From assembly GCF_000150275.1 (NCBI RefSeq), contig NW_002060950.1:2966596-3030595 (forward strand): 64,000 nt of DNA. Reading direction: 5' to 3'. Shown in pieces: positions 100 to 64,000 of this stretch (its first letter is position 1; every line of letters begins with the position of its first letter). The notes below the pieces were generated by a model that did no database searches, had not been told where the DNA came from, and saw only the letters and a list, made by a program, of their open reading frames with translations. The position numbers and the translations under genes are program-made. Source of the DNA: Trichoplax adhaerens (Eukaryota > Animalia > Placozoa).

Positions 100-3000
100 A
101 TCGAGCTCTATCATTTGGCTAGTGAAGGAGGAATCGTTATATCTTTGGATATGGTGCAGGCCAATCAAGTGTAATAATATATGATTACTATTGCTTATCA
201 GTAAACTAACTTTATGAACTGTTGTTTTGAAACACTTCACGCAATATTGGATAGTTTTAGGAGTTTATAGGGAGCTTTTATATAATTATCGTTCTTTACA
301 AATTAGAAAATTAGCTATAATTATTGATGTTCTTTATAGTTTTTCTTCAATTTCTGCTAACTAGCATAGTTCTATAGTTAATATTAGCGGCGAAAATTCC
401 TAGCCAGTTGAACTAATATAGCTATATAAAAGTAAAGAGTCTGTTCAAAATAAGCTGAACCAATTTAATCCATCTATTTTTTCCCCCTCTTAGACAGGTA
501 TCATATCTCACAGAAAGTGATGCTATAATAGCATTTATATGTCTAGATCAATTTGAAATTTGTACTGGTCAGCCTATAATAGTTCAGTTTAAAAGTAAAT
601 GCAGTCAATATTTGAATAATGAGATGTTACGAATCCGAAGTCTTCTCGAGAAGCAAAATAATAATAGTAATAGATCGGTATTAGAACAGCAAACTCGTCC
701 TCGATTTCCACCAAAGCAAAAGAACTCTGCAAATGAAGATACACAATCATTTCCGCTCCAATCTTGTTTTAATTTAAGTAAGGCTTCGAGGCGACTTCAG
801 GCAAAGAATTTATTTCTTAATGATAGAATTAATCGCAACCAGAAAGTGGTTCAACAACATTGTACTAATGTTAACGATTCTACAAAATTTTCCGCATTGA
901 CAAAGACTATGATTGAGGAAGAGTACCCTTTCTCTAAGAAAGCTTACATCCTTATCGAAAAATTGAATCTGGAGCAAAGAATCCGTGATAAAGGTTGTGA
1001 AATTTCTTTCGCATTTAGAGAGGGTAAAGATGGAGGTTTATTGAGTGCAAGAATGATCGATGGCAATCAAAGTTCTATCTTGAAGGAATTAATGAATTTT
1101 TTCAACTGGGTCGATTCTAGAGAAGATTTATCTGATAGACTATGCAATTATCTTGCTATAAAAACAGATACGACTGAAACTCTTAATAAGGAATGGAGCG
1201 ATCAAAATATTGATGCCGTTATCGTCCCTACTGAAGAGAATACTTGCATATCTATCATTGCTAAGAATATGGCAGTATATAACAGAGTTAAAGCCTTGCT
1301 ATTGCAATTCTTCTGTACTAAAACAACAAAATTTACTGGTGAAAATCTCTCCTTTCCAAAAGACACCCGTTTACTCCTTTCTAGTATTGAAGAAGATGTT
1401 CCCGGATGCAGCAATATCCTACTAGAAGCTAATGTGGATAAAGATGCGAATAATTATATCATAACAGCAATGGGTCCTCGTAATATTGTTAAAGATGTTA
1501 TTCAAGCTATAGAAGCTAAAATAGAAGATTATAAATTAATCAAATTCGTTATTAGCGATATTTCAGTTTTGAAAACGGAATACTTACGAATGTATTTACA
1601 TGGTGATATCCGGTCTTTAGAAACGAAATACGACTGTCAAATTGAGATCGAAGAAAAATTAGGAAGTGATTCTTGGTGTGTGGACCTACGTAAAAATTTT
1701 TCTATCGAGTGTTGCCACATTCATAAAACTACTATTAGCAACAAAGTTCAAGCTCTGTTACAAAATATTACTACGGAAGAAGGAGGTCGGATTAGTAAAT
1801 ATTCGTATATTGGGCGATTGTTTAGTAATAGCAAACATAAAGCCAAATTAGAGCGCCTACAAGGAGAACTACAATGCTTGATTGCCATGACTGATGATAA
1901 TGACGAAAGGTACATATATTATTCAATTAATCGTTGAATTAAAGTAATAAAAATTATTTAGTCGTATTAGATTTACAACAGTTATAAATATAGAATGATG
2001 ATTGAAATAATATTAAAAGTGAATGAGTGAGAGAAAGGAAAGTCAATATGGCCTCGTTGTTTCCTCAGAGAGGAGGAAGATATAGTCAAAATGAAATGCC
2101 AATACGGAAATGGGTTACATTATTACCAGTAGAAGCAACTTGCGTAGGATAAAAATAAACATGGGAATTGCGAGCTTGCATTCATGTTACTACATGTAGA
2201 AGTAGATTGAGCATTCAATTTTTTGGATAAAAATCATTTTCCTCATTTAGGTTTTCTTGTTCTATGTTATAGTAATGAAAGTAAGTCTATGATTGAAAAG
2301 TCTATAATGATTGATCAGAAAGAGGTTCTGCAAACAGCTAAACAAGAGGAAGTAACCGCGACTAAAAGTGCTGCCGTTAGTGATGTAGCTGAATCGGTTT
2401 CGCAAACAAGTAGCGTTGAAAGGCAAATTAATAATGTTGTTATTAAATTGTTACAAGGAAGACTTGAACGAGAAGGTGCAGCTACTGTAAGTAGCAAAAT
2501 AGAATTCGTCTTAGGCTATGCTATCTCTAGTTTAATAATAAATAGAATAGAAACTATAATATCATGTAAAGAGAATATTTTTATTACTTTCAGGCTGATG
2601 TTATTGTCAGTTCCATGAGTTTGAATAATTTTTCAGAAGGTAGAATTGCCGGAGCATTATCAGCTGCTGGAGGAGCAGCGTATCAGAAAGAATGTGTTAG
2701 TCAGTTGCAATCGCTAACAATTAATGGTATTGGCTGTACAAGTGGGCAGTATTTTGGTTGCAAGAAGGTATATCACATTGCATTTTTAAGCTCCAATAAA
2801 GCAATATCGGTAAGTTGATACTCAATATAGAAGATGCTTTAACAAGGCAAATACATTATTGCTAGCCATGAATATATATAGTGTTAACTGCAATAACAGC
2901 AGATAATGATGTTAGTTTATTTGAAAAAAAATTACTAGTTCAGTTAACTTGACAAGGATATGTTATTTTTAATTGCCCGCTTTAGTGGCTTAGCCAACGT

Positions 3001-4977
3001 ATTAAAGATTGCTTAAAAAAAGCTGATAATGAATCCATGCAATCAATAGCCATACCTATCATCGGCACCGGAAGTATTAATTTAAATATCGATGAAGTTA
3101 CCAAGGAAATGATAAAAGTAGCAATAGACTTTGCTCATAAGCATACAGGAAGCCTACGAGAAATCTATTCTATCGTCTTTCCTACTGACTTAAACGTTTA
3201 TAGTGCTATGAAGCAATCGCTAGAATCGAGTAAAGTACTAGAAGTGCAACTTAAACAGCAAGCTGAACTCGTTAAGAAGTTAACAAAATCGACCGGAAAT
3301 ACCCCTACGCATGTAAATCTTAGTGGTACAAAGAAGCTATTATTTTCAGCTCGATGCGAAGTCACTGAAACACCTATTTGTATTAATATTTATGATGGCA
3401 ATATTCATGATGTAGCTGCAGATGCTATCGTTGATATAACATCTTTATGCCCTAAGCATTCGAAAATTGATTCTCATTTAGACTTTATTCACTATAACGA
3501 TGCTGAGCATACATCACAAACTTTGCGAAAACTCTCTTCTAAATCGTGTTCAAGTATATATCAAGTTTGTCCTTACGGTTGCTTATCTGGCTTTAGTACT
3601 ATATTAGCAATCATTAATGCCCGTGAAGAAAAATCGATCGCGATTCCGTTGTTAAGTCATGAAATGGATTTCACTCATGTTTATAGCTTAATAGATACTA
3701 TAGAGATATTTATAGCTAATAATCTAAGTGCGAGCAACGTATCTAAATTGTTTTAATTTTGTCATTGGATATAAAGATCGAAGTCGAGAATTCGCAAGCT
3801 GGATGCAAATTGTAATCGTCGATAAGCCTTTACAGTTTGGGTGGCAAATTACTCAACACGTAGCAGTTAAAGAACTTGGTTTTAATGTAACTTATGTCGC
3901 TAAAGATAAATCTATCATTACTAAGATGGAATCAGAAATGGAAGAACTTACAGATGCTTGGAAGTGTCATAAGTTGACAGAAGAAGATTATTTTGATTCA
4001 GTAGATGAAAGTAGTTGGTCTGAGCTTGCGTTACAATTTTGGTCAGAATATAACACAATGTTAGTAAGGCAAGATCAAGATAAACTTGTATGCATACATG
4101 GGTTCGAGAACGATATACTGAATGCTGTTTCAAGTATTCATAAGCTAAGTAAAACTTACTTTGAAGAGAAAGCTCAGAATGAAGTAGAGAAAGTTATAGC
4201 CGAAACAGCTAAATGGTATGTCGAAGTTGAAAAATCTAAGGTTTACTTTGAAGTAAAGCTAAATTACGAAATCGAAAAAAGCTATAAGATTTACTGTAGA
4301 GATAAGACGATGAAGATTTTTCAAGTCGATGCAGGAAATAGAACGATCGATTTTGGCCAAATGAAGGTCAGGGATACTGACGCAAAAGAGTATCCCATAG
4401 GGAAATTATCCGCAGAAGGTGTGCAAGAAAATGATATCTCGTCAGAGATCACATACGTACAATTATGAATTTTATAATTCTTAATTGCTTTACTAGATCG
4501 AATATAGGGTATAAATGGTTTTTCTTTGTTTTTTATTTAAAAATTCGAAACTGGTAGCATATCTATCAATTATAGTTTGATAAATATATTTATTAATTGT
4601 TTGAATTTTATAATAACTAAAGATCGAATACAGGGTATAGAAAAGTTTTGATCTAGTTCTATGTCGGATTTCGAAACTAGCAGCATATCTAATTTTTATA
4701 GCTTGATAATTACTTGATAACGAAAGCCTTCAGTTATTGTCCAAAGCGACCTTAGTTTAGTCTTACGATGGCATTATAATAATACTCATGGCTTGTTTTT
4801 GTTTATTAGCATTTGCTATACCTCCTAGCTGGGAATACGAAAATCAAGACGAAATTAAAGATGGTTACTTTCACATAGCCGATGTTAAAAATCAAGAGGA
4901 AATAAATGAGATATCTAGCGTTCCGGGATTGAGCGGATTGAATGTTAAAAGGCTACAAAGAATTCAGAATTGGAATT
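100..4977 (+). CDS. PARP14-like: Macro-PARP paralog 1 (PARP14-like), 5' end outside window, 1-bp frameshift at ~3733, runs into N gap within first ART exon
   Basis: Exons 100-170, 494-1909, 2273-2486, 2594-2809, 2986-4418, 4810->4977, all GT/AG and phase-compatible. Contains RRM2 (VQVSYLTESDAIIAFICLDQFEICTGQPIIVQF), macrodomain motifs ADVIVSS..GRIAGALSAAGG and SIAIPIIGTG, WWE-like KWYV..LNYEIEKSY..IDFGQM, and ART start IPPSW..RLQRIQNWN. Has an extra A at 3733 relative to paralog 2. Confidence 0.88.
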
Positions 4978-5027
4978 NNNNNNNNNNNNNNNNNNNNNNN
5001 NNNNNNNNNNNNNNNNNNNNNNNNNNN
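4978..5027. other. Assembly gap (50 N)
   Basis: Run of N inside the first ART exon of paralog 1; a round number, so probably a placeholder of unknown true size. Confidence 0.99.
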
Positions 5028-5619
5028 ATCATATAGCTGAATGATGTTGATTAATCATATTTTGGATATAATGAAGTGTACTATAATTTGAATACTGAAC
5101 CATGACTGAGTCGGTTAAATTGTCAAAAGTTATCGCATTTATTGGCTTTAAGCGAGTTATGATCAGCTCATTAATTCATAGGATATAATGCTATCACGAA
5201 CTAACGTAATCACGTAATCATTCTATCTAGTAATAACACTGCAAAAGGTTGCATGAAACTCATTATCTGGCCAAATCAGGACGATAATAATAGATTTGTC
5301 AATCAAATGAATTGATTGTACTAAAATCTAAACTGTTAGCGTGCCTTCAACATTATCATAACACCGCACAATTTAAAGATAAAAGCTGGAACATAATTCT
5401 TATCTCTAGCGATCTATCGCTGATAATAAATCCAGTTATTTGGATTTATAAAGCTGGATATTACATAAGTGTATTGCAATAAAATCTTATCTGTAAGCAT
5501 TTTAATAATAACTAGTCGAATCCCACTTACCCAGCTGTACACTATCAATGTGACTCAATAAGAAGAAAGCATCACATTATTTGGATACGTTTGTTTAATG
5601 TAATTTATGTCAATACTAG

Positions 5620-5956
5620 CAATATCTTGAAATCTAAAGATGGAAGCTTGATCTCTAAATTAATAATTGTATACATACGTCGAAACTGGATCATTAGAGC
5701 AAAATGATCGATATTAAGATATGCAATAGTTAATCACCAAATAATACTTGCTGCAATCATTGACATGTCATCTTTTAACCCGCTTTATCGAATCAAAAAA
5801 TTATTTTTGATTAAGAGTTGGAAGCAAACAAAGTAATGGAGTTTAAACAAAGTGGCGGATATAACACAGAGCTAAAAAAATAAGAATGGTTTGAAAATGT
5901 ACAAAGTATGCTAAGCAAACGCTGTTATTCCTTTATATTAAACGCTAGTACAAGAC
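5620..5956 (+). repeat. Duplicated downstream-intergenic segment (second copy ~7270-7626)
   Basis: Colinear similarity, e.g. cttgatctctaaattaat..gtatac..tcgaaactg, taagatatgcaatagt, attaagagttg.aagcaaacaaagta, ctgttattcctt..tacaaga in both copies. Confidence 0.85.
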
Positions 5957-6503
5957 GTCTATTTCATGGTACTGCTAGTAGTAAAATAGCTGGGATATGT
6001 AGGAATGGTTTTGATAGAGATTATTCAGGGACAGCTGCAGGTTTGTATGTATAAAACCATATGAATATTTTACACATTATATTAGTAAATGTAAAATAGT
6101 AAATTTTGTAAAGGTATACTTTCATACCTACCCGTTTCCCGTACATCACTGAATAATTTTGAAAATTAAAAAAGTCTTGTCTCGCTGAAATTAAGAAAAG
6201 GATCAAAATCGTTCAATGTATTTCTTTTCTTCCCATTTGCTAGGTTCTACATATGGTACAGGAACTTACTTTGCTGTCGACGTATCTTTTTCGCGGGGAT
6301 ATGGCGATTCATTATTACTAGTGCGTGTTCTAACGGGAATCTGTGGTTATTCAAGCGGCAGTGGTAAGCCAAATTTGTCAATCATTCCCGGAAGCCAAAA
6401 TGAACGTATACATTCCGTTGTGGATAATACAAGTAACCCTTCTATGTATATTGTATCGAATGATAATCCTGCTTATCAGGAATACATAATCTATTTATCG
6501 TGA
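5953..6503 (+). pseudogene. PARP catalytic-domain 3' fragment (half exon plus last exon); either an orphan partial duplicate or the disrupted end of paralog 1
   Basis: 5953-6040 encodes RRLFHGTASSKIAGICRNGFDRDYSGTAAG; intron 6041-6243; 6244-6503 encodes YGTGTYFA..VRVLTG..PSMYIVSNDNPAYQEYII*. It begins mid-exon directly after intergenic-type sequence, and has AYQEY instead of the conserved AYPEY. Confidence 0.75.
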
Positions 6504-12730: not shown

Positions 12731-15700
12731 ATGGCTTCTTCAAGGTAAATTTACATATCATATAATCTATATTTGTATAGACTAATGCTAAATAAACCTG
12801 TCGAGATATGGCAAGAAATACGGAATTTTACATCGTAATTAATTTTTAAATATTTTAGTTTGGAATCCCATACAATATATGCTTGCGGAATTGAAAGTCG
12901 ATTTGTCAAGGTACTGTATTTTAATGTATTCATTCTGACATTAAATAAAGTGTAGTAAAATAATATTACGGCCTATTTCTGCTTGGCAATGTTTTGGGAA
13001 AAAATCGGCTTCTCTCATTAGTCATCATTGAGATTTTTGCTCGTATTTACAATAATCAACTTAGTTCGAATACATGTATGAGATTAAAAGCGTCTATTTT
13101 TAATTACAGCTTTACCAATAACGCGACTTAAAAAATTGGAATAGGATTGTTTAGTCAATTTGATACTGCTACTTACATTTTCATTAATGAAGTTGGATAA
13201 TTATTGTTTTGTTGAAATAATACTGAATTTCATGACCATACATACATATTAGTTATTTAAAGTGAAAGCAAATTGTTGTAGCTTTAGATAATCTGAAGGC
13301 AACGCGGCTTCAAAATTGAAAAGGAATTATTTAGTCTATTTGATGCTGTTTGTCAGCTTTTTTATTGATAGAGTTAGCATAATTATTATTTCGTTGTAAT
13401 GTTGCTGAATTTCATGTCTGTCTAAGTTAGTGATTTAAATTGAGAACAAATTAGCGTTGCTTTGAGTTAGACAATCTTAAGGCAAGCTATGTTCTTTAAC
13501 ATTAGTATCAGACAATTTTTTCTAAATTTTGTTACATTTACATATAATTATTCCAATAAGCAATACTGCACCTAACCTTACCTAAAATAGTAGTGGCAAA
13601 GTGAATTGAATATGCCATTTAGATGCTATTAGCTCACCCTACAATCTTAAATAGCTATGAATAAATGTAGGTTCATTAGATAAAATTAGTTGCTTCTCAT
13701 TCAATCTTGATGGTAACAATTTGTTTTAAAATAATACTAGATATTTTTATAATACTTTATTTATTTGCATTTGACTATTCTAACATGTAGTAACTTACCT
13801 AATGTTCCCTAAATTGATTGTGACTAAGTGAATTAAATATATCATTTAATCATGTAAGTGTTCTCACCGCAATTAATGTATAATATTTAACGATTGCGAC
13901 AGAGTATTACTATATCTGATGAAATTGGTTACTTCTCATTCAATCTTGATAGCAACAATTACTTTTAAAATAGTTTCAGAAATTTTATAATGCTTTATTT
14001 ATTTGTATCTAAATATTCTCATAAGTACTACCGTACCTAATCTGCCCTGAATTGATTGTAGAAAAGTGAATTAAATATGATATTTAGGTGCTATTAACTC
14101 ATTGTACAATATTTTAATAAACTACGACAGAATGTTGCTATATCGGATAGAATTGGTTGCTTCTCATTCAATTTTGATTCTTGATGATAACAATTATTTT
14201 CAAATAACATTTTAGATGATTTGAATAGTATGGTACTAAACACTGAGCAAGAATTTATCCAATGCATAGAATGAAAGCCATATTTTGGCCTAGTAGTCGT
14301 GAAATTAATCGTTTTCAACGCTATTTTGTTTTAACCTAAACGAAGATATCATTCTATCATGATAGTTAAATAGATTATAGACGCTAAATCGATCCATGAT
14401 ATATATAACTTTTAAACTATTGATCTCTTTAATTCACATAGGACTTTGAAGAGATAGTTATTCAATTGGCTCCAGACGTCCAAATTGGTAATTTTAACAC
14501 TTATATATGTTCAGCCAAGAAAAATTGGAACTTTGTGTAAGTCATCATGAATTTAAGTTTTCACATCGTTTTAAAATCGATGAAAGTTCGCTCCTTTTAG
14601 ATCTGTAATGTTAGTTTTAAGCGGCTTATATTCCTACCGAGTTTAAATTAAGTTGCTAGAAATCAGAATGGTTCAATTTCAAGGGAAAATCTTTATTTGA
14701 AATCAAATTTGACAGTTTCTGCATATTTTATCACGCAAGATAAGGTTTTATAGTACTTTGAATAACTAAGAAAATTAGTAATTGCTTACCATGCTTGTTA
14801 TTATCATTAGGGAATTATGCCTTTTTTCAGAAGGAGATTGCGTTACATTAATGGCAAAATTGAGAGGTTTAAAAATTAAGGAGAGCAAAATTCCTCTAAG
14901 ATTATTTTGGCCAGTAGAATTGGTTAACTACAAACGCAAGCAATTGACTAATGAGGTTTTTAAGCAAATGGCGCAATTAGGTCGTAAAGCCAAGGGCTGT
15001 TTCTTCGATATAAGAATCGAAGATAGGTAGGTTGAATTGAGTGCTATACCCTCTCCTTTGCCTTTATAAGTTAGTTCTTCTATACTTATTTCGTTGATGA
15101 TTAGAAATGTCCTAGTTCAATATTTGTAAACGGAATAGAAGAATGAATGATAAGTTTATAGAGTTCAGATGCGATATGCTAATGACATTTTATCGTCTGT
15201 CAATCCTTTAGAAAGATGCAAGCTGTCAAATTTTTGGATAAATTTCGATTTAAAACCACTAAAACGACAGTTAAAATATTCAATGTTCCTCTATGTATAA
15301 ATAAAGTCAGTTAAGTTTGATGATGAACACTTTTTGTCGGATTTAGATTAGAGAGAAATTGACGTTGTGATAATGTAATTGTAATTCCATTAATAATGAT
15401 AGATCGAGCTTTATCATTTGGCTGGGCAAGGTGGAATGGTTGCTTCTTTAGATATGGCGCAGACTGATCATGTGTAATATCATATGAATACTTTTTGTTC
15501 ATCAGTAAACTAATTTCATGAATTATTGTATTGATAGAATTCACACGATATTTGATAATTTTAGAAGCTGATAAAGAATCTTTGATGATATCATTATTTT
15601 CAAAATTAGAAAATCAGCTGTCATTTGGTGGCTGATGCTTTTTATTTTGATTTTTTAATTCCCGCTAAAATGTATTGCAGCTCTGTAGTTCATATTAGCG

Positions 15701-18700
15701 GCGAGAATTTCTGGCTAGATGAACTTATGTAGCTACTTAAAAGGATGTTCAATATTCGTAAGCTAAATGAATTAAATAAATTTATCTATTTTCTTCTCTT
15801 CACAGGCAAGTAACTTATTTCAGCGAAGCTGATGCTATAATAGCATTACTGTGCCTGGATGGATTTGAATTTTTGACTTGCCAACCAATAATAGTTCAGT
15901 TTGAAAGCCAAAATAGTGAAGCTTTGTATGATGAGGTCTTTCGAATTCGAAATCTTCTTGAGAATCGACAGGATAATAGTAATCGATCAGCATCGCATTA
16001 TCATGATGGTGCTCGATTTCCAGTTAAGCAAAAGAAAAAGTACACTTCAGGTGGAGAGAAACAACCATTTTCGCTCAATTCTTGTTTTGATCCAAGTTTG
16101 AGTTCGAAGCAATTACAGGTGAAGAATCCATTTGTTAATGATGGAATCAATCACCGTGACAAAGTGGCTCAAGACAGGAAAGAACAGAAAACAAGCAAAG
16201 GAGTAAACTTCAATAAGAGTCAAGGTACAAGAACGACACGAAGTAAACCAGTAACCGATGGAACAGGTGTTGAAAATTACGATAGTGCTAGAAAAGTACA
16301 AGGTAAAAGTATAAAAGCATATCTGAACGAAAATAAAGGTAGTCATCAAAGCATAGAACAAAATTCTGGTTTATCAAATAATGTACAGCCTACTCATGGA
16401 AAGCCTCTATCGATGAAACAACAGCGTGCGAATGGCAATGATTCTACTGAATTTTCCACATTAGCAAAAAATATGATTGAGGAAGAGTACCCTTTCTCCA
16501 AGAAAGCTTACATCCTTATCCAAAAATTGAATCTAGAGCAAAGAATCCGTGATAAAGGTTTTGAAATTTCGTTCACATTTAGAGAGGATGAAGATGGAGG
16601 ATTATTAAGTGCAAGAATGATTGATGGCGACCAAGGTTCTATCTTGAAGGAATTAATGAATTTTTTCAACTGGGTCGATTCTAAAGAGGATTTATCTGAT
16701 AGACTATGCAATTATCTTGCTATAAAGACTGATATGATGGATCTTCTAAATAAGAAATTTAATGATCATGATATTGATGGCGCAATCGTTCATACTGAGG
16801 AGAATACTTCCATATCTATTATTGCTAAGAATATGGCAGTATATTACAAAGTTAAAGCCTTGCTATTACAAGCCTTCAGTACTAAAACAACAATAATTTC
16901 TTATGAGAATCGCTTTTTTTCAAAAGACACTCATCTATTCCTTTCTAGTATTGAAGAAGATATTCCCGCATGTAGTAATGTCCTATTAGAAGCTAATTTG
17001 GATAAAGATACGAATACTTGTAGTATAGCAGTAACGGGTCCTAATAATATCGTTGAAAGTGTAATTCAAGCTATAGAAACTAAAATAGATAATTATAAAT
17101 TAATCAAATTTGTTATTAGTGATATTCCAGTTTTGAAAACGGAATATTTACGGATGCACTTACATGGTGATATCCTGTCCTCAGAAAAGAAATACGGCTG
17201 CCAAATTAAAATTGAAGAGAAACAAGGCAGTGATTCTTGGTGTATGGACGTACGTAAAAACATTTCTGTAGAATGTTGCAACATTCATGAAACTACTATT
17301 AGTAACGAAATTCAAGCTCTGTTACAAAATATTACCACGGAAGAAGGACATCGGATTAGTAAATATTCGTATATTGGACGATTGTTTAGTAACAGCAAAC
17401 ATAAAGCCAAATTAGAGCGCCTACAAGGACAACTACAATGCTTGATCACTATGACTTACGATAATGAAAGGTACCTATGGCATTATAATTGACCGTTAAA
17501 TGAAAGCAATGAAATTAATTAATCGTATTAGATTTACAGCAGTTATAAAATACAAAATGATGATTAAAATTGTATTAAACGTAAACAAGTTTAGAGAAAG
17601 GTAAGTCAGTGTGGCAACATTGTTACCTTAGCGAGGAGGAAGATGTAGTCAAAATGAAACGTTAATATGGAAATGGGATTACATTATTATCTATAGGGAA
17701 TCTAGTAGTTAAGAATAGGAATCAATATGGATGTTGCAATCTTGCATTCATATTGTTACCCGTAGAGGTAGAGTTAGCGTTCAATTTATTGGATATAAAT
17801 CGTTTTGCTCATTTACGTTTTCTTGTTTTATGTTTTAGTAATGAAAGTAAACCTATGGTTGAAAAATCTGTCACACTTGATCAGAAGGTGATTCTGCAAA
17901 CAGCTAAACAAGAGGAAGTAATCACAGCTAAAACCGCCGCTCCTAGTGACTCAACTCAACCGGTTTCGCTAACAAGTAGTAACGAGAGGCAAATTAATAA
18001 TGTTGCAATTAAATTGGTGCAAGGAAGACTGGAACAAGAAGGAGCAGCCTCTGTAAGTAGTAAAATAGAATTCGTCTTAGACTATGTTATTCCTAATTTA
18101 ATACTTGATAGAATAGAAACATCTACAGCACTAAATAAAGAGTCCATTTTGAATCTTTTTATTATTTCCAGGCTGATGTTATTATCAGTTCCATGAGCTT
18201 GAATAATTTTGCAGAAGGTAAAATTGCTAAAGCACTATCAGCCGCTGGTGGAGCAGCGTATCAGCAAGAATGTAGTAGTCTGTTACAATCTTTATCGATT
18301 AATAGCATAGGCTGTACAAATGGGCAGTATTTTGGTTGCAAGAAAGTATATCACATTGCATTTTTAAGCTCCGACAAATCAACATCGGTAGGTTGAGAGC
18401 CAATACCTGTTAGAAAACGCTAAATAAAGCAAATACATTATTAGAGGCTATGAAATCATATAGAGTGCTTAATGTAATAATTAATAGAAGATGATGATGC
18501 TAGGCTAAGTAGTTTACTTAGTAAATAGAAGCAGCTTAGTAAATCTGACAATAATAAATCATTTTAATTGCCTGTTTTAGTGGCTTAGCCAACGTATTGA
18601 AGATTGCTTAAAAAAAGCTGATAATGAATCCATGCAATCAATAGCCATACCTATCATCGGCACTGGAAGTATTAACCTAAATATCGATGAAATTACCAAG

Positions 18701-33047: not shown

Positions 33048-33088
33048 TGTATATCGATCACGAAATTCCAAATTTTAGAAGAATAAGA

Positions 33089-35335: not shown

Positions 35336-36040
35336 GATGGCAAATGGCGGAGGTTGTGTTGATTGGCGATTGTTAAGCAGTTAGATTGTTATTTTTATGA
35401 CTAAATCTTGATGTTTAAAAGTTAATTTTTAGACTTTTGTGATGTATAAAGATTAGGAATTATGTTAAAAGTGCAACTTAATGTATTTTATAGTATGTTT
35501 GGTTTTATAGCGTTTTGTAAGGGAATCGTAGGGTAAATCGTGTCTAAACTTTGAGTAATTTTTGATTTCTTAAGTGGTGGAAAGTAGTTTTCTAAAATGG
35601 ATCTTAAGAGTGATTGGTTAGAAAATATTAAGTTTTAAATACCACTGAAAGCTCAGCAAAGCCTATAAATGATAGTGCAATCAGAAAATTTAGAGTAGAG
35701 AGTAAAAGAAAATTGTTTTGAAGAACTTGTTGAATTTTAAAGGCCTTAGGGGTCGAACTATTGTAAGTTAAAACGTTCTTTTTTTGTTATGTTGTTTGGT
35801 TGTTGACAGTTTTAGTTCTGCCGTTTTTTTTTATTTGTTTACTTATAATACTTGGAGTTAAGTATTTGGAAGGCTGCTTGATCAGACTCTCTCACGTTTT
35901 CTTAATAAATGTTGATCGGTTTTTCCCCAATTTTATTTGGTGTCAAAGTTTTGCTTAGTCGAACAGAGTGCAAAGAAAGTAGAATCATAGGTAGTTAAAA
36001 GTTTTGTAACCTGATTTCTATACAGTTCATTTTATGACGC
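35336..36040. repeat. Repeat family B copy
   Basis: Matches 22735-23430. Confidence 0.85.
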
Positions 36041-48687: not shown

Positions 48688-51600
48688 ATGGCTTCAGCAA
48701 GGTAAGCTGGCAATAAAATTGTTATGGCTGATTGTAAGTAAGAAATGATAATGGCTATAGAATTATTTGAGTAAAATATCCAATTTTTAAAATGCAGCTT
48801 TCATTTTATCAAAAGTTTTGAAGTAGAACTAAAATGCTATACTAGCAAACTTTTATTTAAAGTTGTAGTGCATTTAGAATATACTGTTACTATATTCTTA
48901 TATTTAGACATATATCTACAGTCTGTTCGCTCTACATTCAAATATGACTTACTACATTTAGTTATTACAGTCCTCGCTATTTTCTACAATCATCTGCTAT
49001 TCTATAACCTGTTATGGTATATGTTGTATCTAATCCATAATCATATTCTCTGTATATGTTCTAATGCCATAGCTATAAATACTGCCGTTTTCTACCTTAG
49101 ATTTGTCAAGTTGTATTATTAGTCACAGTTAGTATTCACACTTTACTCACGACAACTACCACAATGACCTACCACAATTATCACACTGTACCTAACTTCT
49201 ATCTACAATAAAGTATCCTCTTTTCTTAAGCTCCTTGTGCAATTCTCTGCATGGCAACTAAAACCACATTATCTGACTCTTCGAACCCTCCATCACAACA
49301 GTAATATTATTATTTTCAACTACTACAGTTGTCATGGTCGTTTTGCCTGCTATGCATATCGAATTGTGCTGTCTTGTATATAATACAATGATTACTGTAT
49401 CTTAATTTACCTTCCACACAACAAGCAATAATAAAGTTGAGCTAAAAGTCTGCCCATTCCAGAGGATTTTTAGCAATGTAATTGTATCCTTATGTACGAG
49501 CCACTAGATCCTAAGTAAAGTATCTAGTCATCCATGGCTTATGCCATTCAGTGACTGGAAACAATTATTCTTTAGACATAAATTCACGAAGGACATAGAA
49601 AATTTCTCCATCTTTTACATTATTAATGCTACAATATAAATTGAAAAAAAGTTTGAAGTAAACGTTTTAAGTTACCAATAAATATTTGGAATAGCAGAAA
49701 TAAATTAAAATTTGTTAATTGGCTAAACTTAACAATTTCGGATCAAGTATCTAAGTACTGGCGTGCTTCAAAGATTTGAATTTTAAATTAAAGATAATAT
49801 GGAAAAAATAATTGCAAATGATATCTGACGTCGAAGACATTTAAACTGAATTTTTATTAATTATAATTTAGATCAGAATGGAATGTTATTTATGCCTGCG
49901 GAATACATAAACGAGCTATACGGGTAATATAGGAAGGAAATCCAGTTTGTAATCAAATATTATTGATTAGCAAATTAATCATAAGTTATTATTCTTCTTC
50001 TTGTACTTTAAAATGTTACTTACATAGACTTCTTCCAGACTTTAATATCTTTCAATGGAAAACTGTTATTTATGGTTAAGCATAATCTGAATTTCCCTTA
50101 ATACTGATGTCTTATCTTATTTAGCGAAAATAATGAGAAGTGCTAAACTGTAACAAATGATTTTACACTATTTTACTCATTTCATTACTTGAAATGATCT
50201 AGTAGATTGGTAGATATAGAATTTGACTGTTAGGATAAAATTGAATATAGCTTTCTTGATCCCTCCAATTAGGTATTAGAAGCCTTCATTTTAGCAATTA
50301 GAAACAATTTCCGTATTTTCAGTTATTAATTTTATTATCAAAGTAGCACTAAAATAGCACTGCTGATTTAGGCCGGTCATTTTGCCAAATAGCAGACAAG
50401 ACATATACTAGAGAAGAGTTGGTGTATGTAGACAAGTGTATTTTCCCATAATTCCATAAAATTCGTATGTTTAGACTCATCAGTTACAGTTTATTTCTAC
50501 GAATATCTACAGTAAGTGTTAATTACTTGAGTGGCTTTCGCATTGGCAAAGCTCTGAATAGCTCATACTCTTATATGACGGAAGGTGTTTACCGGAATAA
50601 CGTACTCATGTAATACTGATAGCTATTATAAACTGATCATCACTACTTGACAATAGTAATTTCTGATGACCCTATTGGATAATGTTGTTATATAATTAGA
50701 AAGCTCTCAATCTTCAGAGAATTATTTGTACCTTACTAACTACAAATTTTTTGAACGATACATATCAGCACCTTCATAGGAGCGATATAAACAATGGCTG
50801 ATTTGCTAACAAATTTTAATTTACTCTTGCAGCAATTCGTTCGGACGGTTAATGAAATTAGCCCTGATACAGAAATTTGCATGATTAAATGTACGTGTGA
50901 TAAGAAGCTGTCTTGGCTAATTTCGTAAGTAAAATAATAAGAAATTTCTAAATGTTATGCCACAATATTGAACTTTACTATCTTGTATACGTTTAAACTC
51001 AGTCACAAATATAAAAATATTGGCTAAATAAATATCACCTTTCTTATAATGAAAATATATTGCGATATTTGATCAAATAGTAAGGCATTAGTCGTGTTTT
51101 ATAAAAATGAACTGCTGTATTTATTGCATCTATAGATTTTAGAACATTGTTAGCGCTACGTAACATTTGAATTTTATTTTAATTCCTTTAAATTTCCTAT
51201 TAAATTTAAATGAATCGATAATTGAAAACGTAAAATCCAAATAAATTATATATGCCTGTATGGATCATTGATATTCCATTCATTTGTTATTCGTAACATT
51301 GATTTAGGGAATTGATTGCTTACTCAAAAACAGAGGCTGAAATATTGATGAGTAGGTTAAGAGGTTTAAGAATTGGCAGAATGAGATTAAGAGTATTTTG
51401 GCCTGCTGAAATGGGATATTATAAACGTCGACAATTAAATGCAAAGGTCGATGGTTATATGAATAAATTGAATAGTAGTGAAATAGGCTGTTTTTACATT
51501 AAAGAAATTGAAGATAAGTAAGTTGAATTTAGTCAGTTCTAGTTGAAAAATACGAGCTGCTTTTATTGTTATGCTATTTTGGGTATGGTTTGATTTCATA

Positions 51601-54600
51601 ATAATGCAAATTTCCAGATCAGTAATCATTTCAGCTATGACTATTAATCATAAGCTAAATTATAAATATTTTGTAACTTTAGAAAGCTTAAAGTTACCGA
51701 AAATATGAATTCATCACGATTGGCCAATACTTCGGCTGCTGTCACAATATCTAATGTTCCTGAATCAATGCATGAGGTGAATAAAGTACTTCGTAAATAA
51801 ATGCTCGGATTTATGTTATCTATGAGCAAAAAAGTTTATTCATCACAACCGAAGCTGTAACACAAGGAGATAATATAAGCGTCGTTATCCGTTATTGATC
51901 CGGAAATCTCCTTTGTAACTTGATATTGAGTAGAATTGCTCTTCCAATAGCTTTTTATTGATGTTATTGGTATAAGGCTACCTTATACCCTGCTGACAAT
52001 TTTTTTGATCAACGTGTATAATCTATCTGACTATTAGCCATTTTAGCTCAATTCAGTACTATTCAATCAATTTTTGTTAATAAATAATATCTTATATAGA
52101 GATTACTATCATTCTTTTAATAGATGAATTAATCGATTAATGAATATTTTAAAAACAACAACTTGGTAAAACCTCTGAAAATTTGTTAACCAAAGCAATG
52201 ATTTTCTATTATTATTCTACAGCCATAATTACCATTCTATATATACAAGAAATCTACTAGTATAATTTAAGTTTTACGCTTGGAGTTTGATAACGTCACT
52301 ATATATCATGGTATTTTTATCGATAACATCATTTGATCCAATTTCATCTTTATTATAATTATAGATGGAGCTCTTTCATTTGGCGAGTCAAGCTGGAATA
52401 GTATCGTGCTTGAAAATGATAAAATCTGATAAAGCGTAATAAGACTTCTCGCCTATAATGATTATTTTACTGCTTGTCTTTCATTCTGACAATTGAGCTA
52501 TTCATCTTATTATTATTATATTATGAAGATTACAAATTATATTATTCTACAATTTCTGACAATTTAAACCGTATATTATGTTGTAGTTTAAACTTCAGTA
52601 GTGTTACGCCTTATGATCAGTAGCATTAAAATTAAAGTTACTAACATTAATATTCTTTTTTTAGACATGTATTATATAACGGACAAGCCGGTGCTCTTAC
52701 TGCTGTACTATGTTTGGATGAGTTCGAGGTTTTAATTGAAGAACCCATTACTGTGAAATTTACTAAGAATGTTAAGTCTAAATTTCTTAAGCAAGAGGCT
52801 TCCCGACTTCAAAATCTCTTGAAAAGCGAACTTAACCATCTGCTGCCATCGACAATTTTGCCCAAAAATCTATCTGTGACCGAGGAAACAAATACTGTCG
52901 ACCAACCTGAAATTGATAATCAGAATGGAATTGAGCAATTAAAGCATGAATTAATGGAAAGTCAAAACACTCATAAATCTCACGAAGGTGTAGAAGGTGT
53001 AAGAGAAGCTATTGCACCTAGTAAAATAGAACACGAAGAGATAACCAACAGCGAAATGGATCATCAAGATATTGTTGATAGCAAAACGGATCATGAAAAT
53101 TTAGCCGATAGTGTTGCAGATCATAAAGATATGACTAATAGCATAACAGACCACGGAAATTTAGCAGATGGTAGGATAGATCATAAAGATACAGCAGATA
53201 GCGAAACAGATCATGAAAATTTAGCAGAAGATGGGGTACATCATGAAGATACGGTAGATAGCGAAACAGATCATGGAAATTTAGCAGATGATGGGGTAGA
53301 TCATGAAGATACGGCAGATAGTAAGTATCCGATAATTGAAGGTAGAATAGAGCTGAGTTATTGCATGCATCGAATTTGATTGCAATTCTGCTATTAATAG
53401 GTCTAAAGAAGTAACATCTGTTCAGGATAGAATTGAAATCTTCTTACGATTAAATTTACTAACACTACAATTTCTCCGGTATCTGATATAGATATGGTTC
53501 GGGAAGAATATGATGTACCCGAGAAAGTTTGCTTTCTTCTGCAACAAGTTAATCTAGAACAGAAGATCAGGGATGAAGGTTATAAAGCTTCATTTGAATT
53601 TGCAAATGGCAATAATGGAAGCAAATTAATAGCCTATATGATCGGTGGAACACATATTTATCTTACGGAAAAATTGTTTGCATTCTTTCGTGTAATCGAT
53701 GGAATAGACAATTTACCCACTCGAATAGGCAATTATCTCGCGCAACAGTCTGAAATGAGAGAACTTATTAATAAGAAATTCCAAGACGATAATATTAGCG
53801 CTGGTGTCTTCAAGATGAAGGATAGCACTTCTATTTCCATAGTTGCATTGGATTCTGAAGTCCATGAAAAGGCGACGAAAATTTTGAAAGAAATCTTCTG
53901 CGTAAAGTCTAAAAAATTCAACATTACTAATGTACCTATATCAGGGGATCAAAATCAATTTCTTACTCAACTTCAAGAAAGTATTCCCTTGTGCTGCAAG
54001 GTTCAATTGGAAGCTGAAATATCAGATAATAGGACTAAAACTTGCAATATAACTGCAACTGGCCCTCTAGTTATTGTTGATAAAGTAATTCAAGCTATTG
54101 CAGATAAAATAGAAAATGATAGGCTGATGAAGTTCGGCCTTAATATTAACCCTCCATTGATCATTGAATATCTACGGATGTATTTTCAAGATGATATTCG
54201 GAGATTGGAAAAGGAATTTAAATGTCAAATTGAAATGGTAGAAGTACTGGAAGATGATCCTGATATCAATGTAACGACTGCAAATATTCTTATCACACAA
54301 CGTCAAGGTTATAAAACAGCTATACATGATAAAATTCAAAGTATGGTAGCTGAAATTGTGGTGGAAAGAGAAGGTCCGTTCAGTAAGTATTCTAGACTTG
54401 GGAAATTTTTTACCGGTTGTCTAAGTATGGATGAGTTGGATAGATTAAAAGATACAAAGCCGTGCATTATAGCCATCGCTAGTAATGAAAATTATCGGTA
54501 AGCTATGAAGAACCATTTGTGCAATTGTAATGATATGGAAATTCGATTTAGCAGACGTCCAAAATCAGATAGGATCACAATTTGCAGCGTGTAGGATATT

Positions 54601-57600
54601 TATTGTATATTTATGAGAATCTTTAGCAGTAGAATTAGAGCTAAATATCTCATAATATACCGTGTATAATATTGTTAGCTTAAGCGATAGTCATCATACA
54701 CGCATTCGCCCTTTAGTAATATAATTAGTGCTAAATATTACTTAATATTCTATGTATACTATTAAAATGATATATGATATCTACGATACGTTCTTGTCAA
54801 TTTTTAGCTATATAAGTAGAGTTGAGTGTTACATAATATTCCTTGCATACTGTTTGCAGCGTTTATGGTATCCACTGCATATTCATGTCGATCTTTAGTA
54901 GTAAGCGTAGATTTGAGTATTTCATAATATTCTGTAAATACTAGCATTAGCAATTATTCCTATGCAAGTCTCTGTAATAAGCGTTTCTTTTTTCATTCCA
55001 TTCCAATCTTAGTGTGCTGTCACAGAGAAAAGGTAAATTTAATCTAAACTTACAAAAAGATAGACAAAAATCTGGTGTCTATCAATCTTCTGTGCTAAAC
55101 GCTAGAACCGCTCTTTCGTCAAAAACTACCACCAAAACTTGTTCTTCTATTTTACAAAATGAAAAAGATAAAGTGGAAGTCAATAATGTTACTATTAGAT
55201 TGGTAAAAGGGAGAATTGAAAAAGAAGGAGCTCAGGTAAATCAAAATGCCACAAATAGATCTATGTTAAAAGATTCTAACGCAAGGATAGGCATTTTGGT
55301 TACCGTACCATACTTGAGTTATGATATGTATTATGATAAAATTAACTGCATTTCAATTTTTCGTTTATGCTAGTGTGATACTATCGTTAATTCCATTGAC
55401 CTCAATGATTATGACCATGGTAACATTGCTAAAGCTCTAAATAGAGCTGGTGGAAGTTCCTATCTTACAGAATGTCGTTCTCAACTAAGATCTCTTGCAG
55501 TGGACAGTATTGGTTATACAAGTGGGTTCTATTTTGGTTGTAAAGCAGTATATCACATTCCATTCTTGAGCTCTGACCGATCATTACTGGTACGTGGAGT
55601 ATGCAATTGAGATTGAATTTATTGTATGAGATTATGATAGTGATAAAATTAAAATTATATATTCAGTTGCTGCACCGATGCACGCTTAATTCAATACTGA
55701 TCGATATACGTGTATTTCTCCATGATAATATTTTAGTGGCTTAGCAATCGTGTCCAAAACTGTCTAGTAAAAGGAGCTGATGAACATAAGCAATCCATTG
55801 CCATACCTGCTATTGGAACAGGTGAAGCCGGCATCAATATTGATGAGCTTGCGAAGGAAATGATAAGAATATCAGTTGAATTTGCTCTTGACAGACCAAA
55901 ATATCTACAAAATATCAGTTTTATCATCTATCCAACCGATGTTAAAACTCTTGATGCCTTCGAGAAAGCGCTAACATCTGCTATCCCATTAGCAAACCAA
56001 TTACTGCATCAAAAAGAGCTAGTCCATAAGGTTACAAGTTCGCAAAGAAGTATAAAATTAGAGAATGAAAGTAAATCGCTATTCTCTGCTCAGTATGAAG
56101 CTAATAATAGAAAAGTATTTGTGGAGGTCTATCAATGCAACGCTGATGATTTGAAAGCAGACGCTGTCATGGATGTAACAGCTCTATGCTCTGAGCATAG
56201 TTATTCAGATTCCCTTTCAGAAACTATACAAATTGCGAATGATGGAACGCATACATCACAAACTTTACAAATCATACATATATTAGGTTGTAATCTCTAT
56301 CGGGTTTGCATTTACGATTGTTTGGTTGGTGTTAAGACTGTATTAGCTTGTATGAATGCAAACGATGAAAAATCCGTGACAATTCCTTTGTTAAGTATTA
56401 ACATGGATGCTAGCCATATTGATAGCCTAGTAGACAGTATTAAGGAATTTATAGTCGATCATTGTGAATCTGAAATTAGTATAAGGCGTATTAATTTTGC
56501 TATTGGGTATGATGATCGAGCTCGAGAAATAGCAACGTGGATGCAACAGAAAATCAAGAAAGAGGCTTTCCCGTCTGGATGGAAGATTACGAACAGCGTG
56601 CCAGTTCTAGCATCGGGTGTGAGTATACTTTATGTTGCTTCAGATAAAGCTGTATTAAAGCGTTTAAAATCAAAAATGAATGAATCCATGGATACTTGGT
56701 CGCATCGCAGGATTTCTAATGAAGATTATTTCCAAGTCATTGATACAAATTGTTGGTATCGACTCGTATTACGATGCTGGTCGGAGTTTAATACTATTCT
56801 AAGCAGTCAAAAAATGAGAAAAATTGTAGACATACAGGGATTGGAAAAAGATATAGTCAACACTATGGCTATTATCCATAAACTAAGTAAGCAATATTTC
56901 CTAGGGGAAATATTGAACAGTGAGCAAAAATTTGGATTGGATATTTCCAAGTGGTACGCAAAAATTGGTCAAACTAAATGGAAATTCGATTCCAACTTAA
57001 ACTATGAAATCGAAAGAAATTTTAAGATTTACGAGAAAAATAAAGCAAAAAAGAATTTTTACGTTGATTCAGAAACTAAAGTGATCGATTTTGAGAATAT
57101 GCACATTAAACTCGATGATAATGAAGAATTTCCAATAGGAAAATTTTCTGCAGCAGGTATTTCACAACTCTTGAAACAAATTGCACTTAAGAAGTATTAT
57201 AGCGAGTTTTAGTATCTTTTGTTTAGCAGCGAATACAGATATACAGATAGGAGTTAATGGTCAGAATATTTTTTTCATCAGTTCGAGACCTAATATTAGT
57301 CCTTGAAATCTTTGCATTTTCATTTTCAAACTTATTATTTAACAAAGTATACTTTAACTGTCTACCATAACTGTAAAATTAGGTATTGCAATTCCTATAC
57401 CCAATAATTGGGAAAATGTGTCAGAAAATCAAATCGAAGATGGGTATTTTAGCACAGTTTATGTCACAGACAGACAGGAAATAAATAAAGTCGCTGCTAT
57501 GATAAAGGCAAGTGCTCCCAAATATTGCGTTAGTAGATTAAGAAGGGTTCAAAATTGGAATTTGTACCAAAAATATCAAGCCATGAAGGCTGATGTGACC

Positions 57601-58165
57601 AAAGCAATACAAAAATACAAGCCTGGAACTCAAGCTGAAAGATATTTATTTCACTGTACTAAAACAGAATACGTGGATAAGATATGTCAAGGTGGTTTCA
57701 ATAGGGATTACTCAGGAAAATCAATTGGTTAGTTAAATGATAACTACTGCTATAAACGCACAAGAAGATAATCATAACTAGTGTGGTAAATAGGCGTAAA
57801 GTGGATATTACACGGTAGTACTTCTTAGCTACTTAGAAATTAATGGTATACAACTATACATGCTTTTTTTATTGAATTGTATAGGCTCAGTATATGGTAC
57901 CGGAACATATTTTGCAGTACAAGCTCAATTATCATTGAGTTATGGCGGTGGTTTAGGAAATCATAGATTGCTACTGGTTCGGGTTTTAACAGGGATCTAT
58001 GATGATTCAGTAGATCGAAATAAACCTACTTTGTCAATAATCCCTGGGAGTTCAGGGGAACGCGTCCATTCAGCTGTAGATCACAAGAATAAGCCTCGTA
58101 TGTTTATTGTCTTTAATGATAATTCTGCGTATCCCGAGTATATTATTGAAGGTAGAGTCGAATAA
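48688..58165 (+). CDS. PARP14-like: Macro-PARP paralog 5 (PARP14-like), intact, ~1559 aa, with His/Asp decapeptide repeats and an FHCT variant motif
   Basis: Exons 48688-48701, 49872-49923, 50833-50924, 51308-51517, 51683-51776, 52365-52435, 52665-53320, 53492-54497, 55013-55235, 55374-55589, 55737-57156, 57383-57727, 57885-58165 (4680 nt, in frame). ART LFHCT / YGTGTYFA / PRMFIVFNDNSAYPEY. Confidence 0.92.
53029..53320 (+). repeat. Coding minisatellite, ~10 x 30 bp (DHxD/NxxDxxx) with 60-bp higher-order period
   Basis: DHQDIVDSKT DHENLADSVA DHKDMTNSIT DHGNLADGRI DHKDTADSET DHENLAEDGV HHEDTVDSET DHGNLADDGV DHEDTAD. Confidence 0.95.
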
Positions 58166-61559: not shown

Positions 61560-64000
61560 ATGTCTTCGTCCAGGTAAGGTTACTATAGTACCTACTTGAT
61601 TGCAAATATCGGACCAAATTAGGCTACTTAACGACTTATTGCATTGCAGGTCTTAAATTTAGTTATTAATATTTTACAAATTTTATCCATTTTCATGCAT
61701 CAAATAGTTTGATAGCTTAGGTTTTCAATTATTTATATATTTATGAATCAGAAACGTAATAGCTGAATGATTTTATTTTTAAGATAAATTTCTAAGCAGT
61801 TTTCTTTCACCTATACGTCATTTTATCCTCATATTACAATCACCTTCCTGATAAGGTTTATTTGTATTAATATAATTAATATCCAGTGTTATAGCTAATA
61901 GAAGAGAAAATAGCGTATCAACTCCGTCGGCGTGATTACTACAAGTTACAACTAGCTATAGTTAGTAATGCTTACAGATATAAAGAAATTGTCACTACCA
62001 CAGTAAATCTGTAGAAGACAAAATTATATTTTAAAATAAACTTTTTTGCACGCTATCTTTTCAAGACTTTACAATTGAATTGTAAAGTAGATTAAACAAT
62101 TTTACATCTTTAAGCAAATGTATGATTTTTGTATACCTTAGTCCAAATTCGTATGTTTTATACGCCTATGGAATAGAAGACCATGTCAGAGAGGTATTAT
62201 ATTATGCTTTAATACATAGCAGAATATATTGAACTGATTGAATGCAACTACTGAAAGACTTTTAGAACGAACAACCAGATAATCTAATGCCGCTTGCTTT
62301 TATACTCTCCGCAGCCTTCGCAGCTGCATACTCTAGCATAGAGTCAACAATTAAAATCTGTTATTATGGGCTACTAAATATGTCGCAAGATAAATATAGA
62401 AACGATACTACCGCACATCGTATTAAACATGACTAATAGCCTACACTTACAATACATAGTTACTTTACAATTACATATTCTGTATGGTGTATTTTAAAAG
62501 TTCTAGTTAGGCCTATAATATAGTAAGTGCTGATAATAATTTTCTGATTTTCGTTAATAAGCACTGCTCATTATGTTTCTTAGGCGTTTCTAAAGAAAGT
62601 TCGTGAAGTAAATAGTAATGCTTCCGTTAGCCTGACCAGATATACATGTAGCAGAATGAGCAACTGGAATTTTGCGTACGTAAGAAAAATGGAAATTCGC
62701 TACGACATTGCTAAAAAATGACATTCAAAGCATTTAAGCTATATCTATCTCGTAGCTTATACAAAGAAATATTGCGTACATATGAAGACGTAGTTTCATT
62801 TCCTCAATATTAAAATCTAACTAAATCCAAAACCATTTTAAATCCTATAATATCAAATATTATAGCTGTATCTGTTTAATGATGTAAGGGATTTCTATAT
62901 TAACCGGTAACATGAGTTATTGACTATTCATTTGTTCGTAATCGACATTTAGGGAATTGAGTATACCAACGCAAGCGGCCGCTGTTAACTTGATGGCTGC
63001 TTTTAAAAGTTTAGGACCTGGAAATAATGGCCTAGGATTAAGATTATTTTGGCCTGAAGAAATAGAAAAACAAAGGTTGCAAAAATTAAATAATAGCCAG
63101 CTAAACCTTTTATCTTCATCATATAAAGGTGGTTGCCCCTGCTTTTACAACGCCATAGTCGAAGTTCGGTTAGGGCAATTTCCTGATTTATATCATGTTA
63201 AACGTCTTCTTTATAGGAAATTTACCACTAAAGTTGTAATTTTACTGATTTACTATTTAGAAAGATACAGGCTATGAAGAATATAAACAGTGTTTCATTG
63301 AAACCCATTAAAACTGCTATCATAATATCTGATCTTCCTGCACCATTGCATAAGGTTGATAAAGTCCATCGTAGTGATCTATCTCAAATCATATTATTAG
63401 TTAATAAAGTATTACAAAATTTGAAATATTTTTTTTGTTGATATCGTCTTGATCTCTATCCAACTCATCCGCAGATTGAGCTCTTCCACTTGGTCAATCA
63501 AAGTGGCTTAGTTACTTGCATGGAGATGATGGAATCCAAGAAAGCGTAATAAATGAGTCTATTTAAATGGACTAGTAATATACGTATTTATAAGTCGCTC
63601 TTATAACTACCAAAATAATTTCTATTGTTTGGAAATAAACTAATTATGATTTTAGTTGGAGATAGCATCTTACCGTAGTCATTATAAAGTATTAAGACAA
63701 GTTAATTAGTATGCTTTTAAGTACTTTGGGATTTTTTATAGTTAGTCTGATGAAACCTTGATGTCTTAATTTTTTGACCTTATTAATCATTTGATTTCTA
63801 GATTTGCATCTTTAATTGAATTGCTTATAAATCATTTAGTCTCTAGTTCACGATAATTTCTATATACCATAATATATCATTTTTGAGCAATGGCATGTTT
63901 ATAATTATGATGAAATAAACATATATTATTTCAAGCAAGATATATTATGCTATACATACTTAGTGTTTCTACTTTTCTATTAGGCGCGTAACCTATCTTG
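61560..64000 (+). CDS. PARP14-like: Macro-PARP paralog 6, 5' RRM exons only (continues beyond the window)
   Basis: Exons 61560-61573, 62142-62193, 62584-62675, 62953-63168, 63261-63354, 63475-63545, 63984->64000. Sizes 14/52/92/216/94/71 are identical to paralog 3, with VLYAYGI, LRLFWP and IELFHL motifs. Downstream domains are not visible. Confidence 0.85.
62240..62470 (-). repeat. Internally deleted repeat family A copy in intron 2 of paralog 6
   Basis: caactactgaaagacttttagaacgaac joined directly to actctagcatagagtc..taaacatg.ctaa. Confidence 0.7.

Follow-up and report, generated by a model that had tools for sequence, protein, structure and literature searches.

A probable placozoan-specific tandem array of PARP14-like ADP-ribosyltransferase genes in Trichoplax adhaerens

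INTRODUCTION

A 64,000-nucleotide stretch of the Trichoplax adhaerens genome (scaffold C1407, positions 2966596 to 3030595; referred to here as the window) carries a series of large, related genes, which raises the questions of what these genes encode, whether they multiplied within the placozoan lineage, and which function a set of this size could serve. The public annotation of the 105.6-Mb assembly (1414 contigs) lists TRIADDRAFT_58758, TRIADDRAFT_58761, TRIADDRAFT_64129, TRIADDRAFT_58766, and TRIADDRAFT_58777, and the corresponding proteins of Trichoplax sp. H2 carry the names "Poly [ADP-ribose] polymerase 14," "9," or "11." Citarelli et al. (2010) placed the macrodomain-bearing PARPs of Trichoplax in clade 3B (PMC2964712), and Perina et al. 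(2014) found PARP14-like genes to be often duplicated, and often chromosomally adjacent, in the placozoan and a sponge (PMC4245714). In a 2026 review, paralogs of PARP14 are cited for lower metazoans, sponges among them, and their duplication is interpreted as a response to viruses (PMC13224862). [quoted passage not shown]

Since the genes are annotated and their duplication is published, the array is not a new kind of system. Our analysis indicates that the window very probably belongs to a tandem array, specific to placozoans, of PARP14-like genes for macrodomain-bearing ADP-ribosyltransferases (clade 3), with at least 14 copies spread over ~210 kb. What is added here is the size of the array, a second macro domain, KH domains, and a WWE domain that were missed by Pfam, the variants of the catalytic triad, a conversion tract between two copies, and the state of a copy that appears broken in this assembly.

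RESULTS

The window is part of an array of at least 14 copies

Five gene bodies (copies A to E) and the start of a sixth (copy F) were identified in the window by all-against-all comparison of stop-free segments and by tblastn over 250 kb, all of them on the plus strand (Table 1); other family members are lettered likewise. The original prediction, made from the letters of the window, had described six co-oriented paralogs about 12 kb apart, and exon comparison and tblastn agree with that description, the start-to-start spacing of copies B to F being 10.9 to 13.1 kb. The G+C content is 29 to 35% across the window, and every open frame of at least 90 amino acids is on the plus strand. An extension of the array into its flanks, which had been proposed as a check, placed at least 14 copies between approximately positions 2,910,358 and 3,121,339 of the scaffold by tblastn, with one member, copy Z, in the opposite orientation. 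Three further loci with the central exon of the family are located on contigs C1410 and C1394, and in a word search one large exon of the window was 91% identical to TRIADDRAFT_58777.

Tandem copies in an old assembly could also be collapsed or expanded haplotypes or misplaced contigs, a possibility suggested by the N gap in copy A, by the long N runs that flank the array on both sides, and by the partial copy L, which lies between gaps and is 97% identical to copy B (synonymous divergence [dS], 0.006). The copies in the window, however, differ from one another by 50 to 70% at the protein level and also differ in exon layout, and the independent Trichoplax sp. H2 assembly holds separate orthologs of copies A, D, E, G, and Z. 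An artefact is thus extremely improbable as the source of the array, and a haplotype or mis-assembly origin was rejected for the window copies on the strength of their divergence and separate H2 orthologs.

The copies share an exon layout

TRIADDRAFT_58766, the public model for copy E, aligns exactly with the window and has exons of 14, 52, ~93, 210, ~93, ~72, 654, 1005, 222, 216, 1425, 342, and 276 nt. Copies B, C, and F also have the 14-nt ATG exon, with GTAAG or GTAAA after it, and the 52-nt exon with AG/GT borders, and the 216-nt exon encoding part of a macro domain has AG/GT borders in copies A to E. The 5′ series of copy F begins with 14 nt at position 61560 and continues with a 52-nt exon, a ~93-nt exon, and an exon of 210 to 216 nt. 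The shared micro-exon sizes and 216-nt macro exon of the original prediction therefore match both the public model of copy E and the splice signals.

Copy D differs at its 5′ end, where the KH units are preceded by an exon of 2511 nt that contains a long stretch of low complexity, and no RRM-like 5′ exons were found in this copy. The inter-domain linkers grow by repeat slippage, as in the linker exon of copy E (Table 1). Copy D also contains a coding repeat at positions 39608-39910, a duplication of ~150 nt.

Each full copy has the domain order of PARP14 from the KH array onward

Exons were searched one at a time, and whole-protein results come from the public models (P0161, P0163, P0162, and P0012). 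Pfam recognizes one Macro domain and a PARP catalytic domain in these proteins. The 216-nt exon and the first part of the central exon each encode a portion of the Macro domain, and the PARP domain is divided over the last two exons. On the whole public models of copies A, D, E, and G, PF01661 (Macro) scored 38 to 48 bits (44.5 bits on copy E). PF00644 (PARP) reached 54.3 bits on the model of copy E (cut-off, 26.7) and only 19.8 bits on that of copy D, and the PARP scores of single exons of copies B and E were 24 to 30 bits. The nearest solved ART domains in PDB are those of PARP14, PARP15, PARP12, and PARP10. When the whole genome was scanned with the Macro and WWE models, no match fell inside the window, because the domains there are split or too diverged.

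The remaining domains were identified from predicted structures and profile comparisons of copy C. Its central exon, modeled by AlphaFold with a 19-row alignment as input, begins with the C-terminal half of macro domain 1 (residues 1 to 100), whose N-terminal half is encoded by the 216-nt exon. Residues 112 to 285 form a second, full macro domain (Z, 12.6 to 14), for which the top Foldseek match was PARP14 macro 1-2 and the fold matches were macro domains of PARP9, PARP14, and macroH2A. This domain is followed by a KH type I domain (residues 322 to 400; Z, 8 to 9.5) with a long last helix (residues 373 to 406) and by a WWE domain (residues 402 to 477; Z, 8 to 9.1), which superimposed on TRIP12, DTX1, HUWE1, and RNF146 with a root mean square deviation of 1.4 to 2.5 Å over 64 to 70 residues.

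Upstream of the macro domains, the large exon of copy C encodes a tandem series of KH units with the order β-α-α-β-β-α (Table 1), whose best matches were mainly KH type I domains (Z, 7 to 8.2) and included the tandem KH3-KH4 of FBP. Since the Z values alone were middling, the array was compared by hhalign with the KH array of non-placozoan PARP14-like proteins, which it matched with 98.9% probability (E, 1.8e-17; 303 columns); the KH-WWE unit matched the corresponding PARP14-like unit equally well (98.9%; E, 3.9e-17; 173 columns). In the two separately folded exons, the KH exon ends in a β-α-α stub, and a strand and a helix follow macro domain 2 (residues 285 to 320); these may or may not be the two parts of a split KH domain enclosing the macro domains.

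[quoted passage not shown] The layout put forward originally, RRM-KH-macro-WWE-ART, stands for the KH, macro, WWE, and ART domains, which were recovered by Pfam, folds, or profiles, and is tentative for the RRM. Visual inspection gives the N-terminal exons an RRM-like appearance. A PDB profile search with the alignment of the N-terminal exons found nothing relevant, the best weak hhalign alignment of the N-terminal region fell on RRM_PARP14_3 (E, 0.01), and a feature search of the ESM Atlas gave 0.85 to RRM_PARP14_3 clusters, which serves only as a lead. An RRM-like region ahead of the KH array is therefore supported by weak leads only.

Catalytic triads vary among the copies

Triads were read from the ART exons aligned to the structures of PARP14 and PARP15 (Table 1). 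An H-Y-aliphatic triad is present in copies A, B, C, E, and F, all of which also have a proline two residues ahead of the third triad position, whereas copy D lacks such a triad. Since their triads are degenerate, copy D and copy G are likely pseudo-enzyme candidates.

The copies diverged strongly within the placozoan lineage

The original prediction of strong divergence at the protein level is borne out by the 1.4-kb central exon, in which amino-acid identity between copies is 27 to 49%, with the A/B pair as the exception. Conservation is highest in the ART domain (~50% identity) and lowest in the KH array (27 to 32%). Over 247 codons, the central exon of copy B is 94% identical to that of copy A. 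dS between the two is 0.045 in these first 247 central-exon codons and 0.35 to 0.54 elsewhere, and this unevenness is a sign of at least one gene-conversion patch between copies A and B.

Pairwise ratios of nonsynonymous to synonymous divergence (dN/dS) were 0.2 to 0.5, with dS of ~1 or more for the old pairs, and the sequences indicate that the copies diverged under relaxed purifying selection. No positive selection was seen in pairwise dN/dS, a measure that cannot detect site-specific selection. Pervasive positive selection is given no support by pairwise values in this range.

Duplication within the placozoan lineage is supported by two lines of sequence comparison. In an ART-domain tree of 101 proteins (unrooted, from a quick search), the 11 placozoan models, drawn from six loci of which five are represented by an H1/H2 pair, formed one clade with a Shimodaira-Hasegawa-like approximate likelihood ratio test (SH-aLRT) value of 100 and a stem of 1.87 changes per site. 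A search of 1.84 billion proteins with a central-exon profile returned 21 full-length matches at E ≤1e-80, of which 11 were public Trichoplax models or ~90 to 100% identical to this scaffold and 10 were unnamed proteins from metagenomes or run assemblies. The next matches (1e-58 and weaker) were partial, mostly to the macro domain, and came from PARP14-like or PARP15-like proteins of other animals. The expansion is thus lineage specific, as had been proposed: the ART domains form one clade, and profile scores fall sharply outside placozoan-like sequences. One-to-one orthology with genes of distant animals was rejected on the basis of the ART tree.

Among the metagenome sequences, two contigs of 4.4 to 4.8 kb (ENA ERZ27263980 and ERZ23499115; L041 and L042) have the same exon order, the central exon followed by the PARP exons, and share no more than 47% identity with any copy in Trichoplax. 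Their probable source is a placozoan-like animal, so far unsampled, that was present in the environmental samples.

Intact and damaged members coexist

The mixture of intact, frameshifted, partial, and pseudo-enzyme members that had been described from the letters alone was recovered: copies B, C, and E are open, copy A is frameshifted, copy F is partial in the window, and copy D is the pseudo-enzyme candidate. The damage in copy A occurs at two sites, a frameshift in the central exon and an N gap in the first ART exon. The left flank of the gap stops within this exon, ~76 nt (equivalent to positions 20611-20686 of copy B) are absent, and the exon picks up again at ~5952. Between the two halves lies a low-copy repeat (Table 1) that shares 94% identity with sequence 3′ of the upstream copy Y and 77% with contig C841, with partial matches also 3′ of copy A. 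At the frameshift and the gap, either this strain carries a damaged copy A or the fault lies with the old assembly; the two cases are not separable, because the Trichoplax sp. H2 ortholog RDD42384.1 is continuous over both sites. The 5′ exons of copy A (positions 2936934-2937818) are found ~29 kb upstream, past a 27.6-kb N run (C1407:2939016-2966595) directly before the window, which could hide further copies.

Members of this kind invite the explanation that the array consists mostly of decaying duplicates from neutral birth and death, with one or a few functional copies. The frameshift and broken ART exon of copy A, the degenerate triads of copies D and G, and two copies, H and I, that lack a recognizable central-exon remainder and ART domain are what such a process would leave. 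Yet copies B, C, D, and E retain long open exons (up to 2511 nt) with conserved splice sites, dN/dS is well below 1, and the open frame of copy D is retained in Trichoplax sp. H2 at 96 to 100% identity. Decay as the main state of the array is therefore improbable.

Other features of the array and its surroundings

Copies H (C1407:3057194-3062005) and I (3067645-3071161), both outside the window, retain a KH exon, a macro exon, and 81 residues from the start of the central exon; by tblastn over 250 kb, neither the rest of that exon nor an ART domain was recognizable. Both may be derivatives reduced to the macro part, or else pseudogenes left by truncation. Copy L (TRIADDRAFT_58777; C1407:3119445-3121339) lies 134 kb from copy B, with N runs at its borders, and must have arisen by very recent duplication or else be a contig that was misplaced. 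Clusters of matches to the PARP catalytic-domain exons, without the central exon of the family, were found at C1389:557967-626092 and C1414:11666197-11869596 and are possibly other expanded PARP subfamilies of the same genome.

An interspersed repeat of ~700 nt occurs in the spacer between copies B and C (Table 1) and again, likewise in a spacer between array members, at positions 35336-36041 (80% identical). A genome search gave 295 candidates; because the 40 that were scored are mostly ~95% identical, the repeat is probably a young non-autonomous mobile element.

Table 1. Positions of the gene copies and other features in the window, with the catalytic triads of family members
Feature	Position (nt)	Strand	Evidence	Triad or remark
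Copy A (TRIADDRAFT_58761; H2 ortholog RDD42384.1), gene body	109..6503	+	Public-model mapping, exon homology	H-Y-M
Copy B	12731..21199	+	Recognized exons all open	H-Y-M
Copy C	24659..33047	+	Recognized exons all open	H-Y-L, same as human PARP14
Copy D (TRIADDRAFT_64129; H2 RDD38023.1)	37738..45616	+		H-P-T, degenerate; HRI replaces HGT
Copy E (TRIADDRAFT_58766; H2 RDD38024.1), 13 exons	48688..58165	+		H-Y-M; HCT replaces HGT
Copy F, 5′ exons only	61560..64000	+		H-Y-V; gene runs on to ~3036108 of scaffold
Copy Y				H-Y-M
Copy J				H-Y-V; HRT replaces HGT
Copy Z				H-Y-V
Copy K				H-Y-I
Copy G (outside window)				Y-Y-T
Copy E, exon 1	48688-48701	+	Public model	14 nt
Copy E, exon 2	49872-49923	+	Public model	52 nt
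Copy C, large exon	28646..29680	+	AlphaFold2 predicted local distance difference test (pLDDT) 78, fold and profile matches	Four tandem KH type I units, then β-α-α stub
Copy C, 216-nt macro exon	30284..30499	+	Pfam Macro; AG/GT	N-terminal half of macro domain 1
Copy A, equivalent of 216-nt macro exon	2594-2809	+	AG/GT borders	
Copy B, equivalent of 216-nt macro exon	18172-18387	+	AG/GT borders	
Copy D, equivalent of 216-nt macro exon	41863-42078	+	AG/GT borders	
Copy E, equivalent of 216-nt macro exon	55374-55589	+	AG/GT borders	
Copy C, central exon	30645..32075	+	AlphaFold2 mean pLDDT 80, Foldseek, VIA-align, hhalign	
Copy C, ART domain, two exons	32289..33047 (borders approximate)	+	Pfam PARP and PDB matches of homologous exons; alignment	
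Copy E, coding tandem repeat in linker exon	53059..53321	+		60-nt unit, 4.4 copies
Copy A, frameshift in central exon	3727..3737	+	Frame change between open segments 2986-3753 and 3728-4465	
Copy A, assembly N gap in first ART exon	4978..5027	.	Flanks not continuous	
Low-copy repeat between halves of copy A first ART exon	5028..5951	+	Sequence matches	924 nt
Interspersed repeat, B-C spacer	22735..23432	+	Genome search	~700 nt

DISCUSSION

Several results weigh against reading the locus as a PARP14-type array. Pfam reported no RRM, KH, or WWE domain in these proteins, either on single exons at E values up to 5 or on the whole public models. The array KH matches, at Z values of 7 to 8, are in the middling range for the tool, and hhalign comparison of the N-terminal region with the RRM region of PARP14-like proteins gave probabilities of 0.2 to 4%, which are not significant. 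Two macro folds, not three, separate the KH array from the last KH domain. We know of no characterized precedent for methionine at the third triad position. Pairwise dN/dS below 1 shows no sign of an arms race.

By analogy with characterized relatives, a working model of the family can be outlined. Members with an H-Y-(L/M/V/I) triad would transfer single ADP-ribose units from NAD+, as do PARP14, PARP10, and PARP15 (PMC10450202, PMC13224862, PMC2964712). If PARP14-type biochemistry applies, the KH array would target members to partner proteins or to single-stranded nucleic acids (RNA or DNA), and the macro and WWE domains would read or remove ADP-ribose. The H-P-T and Y-Y-T members, copies D and G, would act as non-catalytic partners in the manner of PARP9.

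What such a set would be used for can be argued in two directions. Analogy makes it plausible, although we hold the idea tentatively, that the set is a diversified repertoire for defence against viruses or intracellular bacteria. The fuller form of this idea is more doubtful: the at least 17 macro-PARPs would constitute a nucleic-acid-sensing repertoire in which the fast-diverging KH arrays give each paralog its own RNA or DNA targets and copies D and G are PARP9-like regulators, an ADP-ribosylation immunity that expanded independently in an animal among the simplest known and is possibly tuned to viruses or to its intracellular bacterial symbionts. The family might instead serve ordinary RNA metabolism or stress signaling, such as mRNA stability and stress granules, with paralogs sub-functionalized by cell type rather than driven by pathogens. 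Replacement changes are not in excess (pairwise dN/dS, 0.2 to 0.5), each sampled copy has a near-identical Trichoplax sp. H2 ortholog, and non-immune roles of PARP14 are known (PMC13224862), all of which such housekeeping duties would accommodate. They would account less readily for the large tandem array with pseudo-enzyme and broken members, which is typical of genes in conflict, for the targeting KH array being the fastest part to diverge, and for the interferon induction of the vertebrate relatives (PMC13224862). We regard RNA metabolism as a possible but rather unlikely primary role.

Under either use, the locus is a candidate immune or RNA-regulatory gene set for placozoan biology, and its natural triad variants (L, M, V, I, and T) are material for biochemical comparison. 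It indicates that PARP14-like genes are prone to tandem duplication even in the 105.6-Mb genome of an early-branching animal. The full KH-macro-KH-WWE-ART layout, which was not recognized in human PARP14 until 2023, occurs in placozoans; should these branch near the base of the animals, its presence there suggests that the layout is old.

Among known systems, the closest is human PARP14 (ARTD8/BAL2). The best solved matches of the ART domain are PARP14 and PARP15, copy C has the H-Y-L triad, the WWE domain stands directly before the ART domain, and a long-helix KH domain stands before the WWE domain. An upstream KH type I array, with the macro domains placed between it and the last KH domain, is also common to both (PMC10450202). 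The Trichoplax proteins differ in having two macro domains where the human protein has three, four clear KH units plus stubs in place of six and a split one, and methionine or valine at the third triad position of most copies; moreover, their divergence is such that the PARP14-specific RRM and KH models and the WWE model of Pfam are silent on them, and RRMs are not demonstrable.

Human PARP9 (BAL1) and PARP15 (BAL3) resemble the Trichoplax proteins in that their ART domain is preceded by two macro domains. The PARP14 partner PARP9 is catalytically degenerate (Q-Y-T), and copies D (H-P-T) and G (Y-Y-T) are comparable pseudo-enzyme candidates (PMC2964712). PARP9 and PARP15 arose as partial PARP14 duplications in vertebrates and mammals (PMC4245714, PMC13224862), whereas the Trichoplax copies form their own clade and, unlike PARP9 and PARP15, retain the long KH array and the WWE domain.

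PARP14-like genes tend to duplicate in tandem (PMC4245714, PMC13224862), and among other invertebrates, Branchiostoma floridae has four clustered copies and the sponge Amphimedon queenslandica six (PMC4245714). The Trichoplax array shares with those clusters the repeated, often tandem, duplication of macrodomain PARPs but is larger, with at least 14 copies on one scaffold and at least 3 elsewhere.

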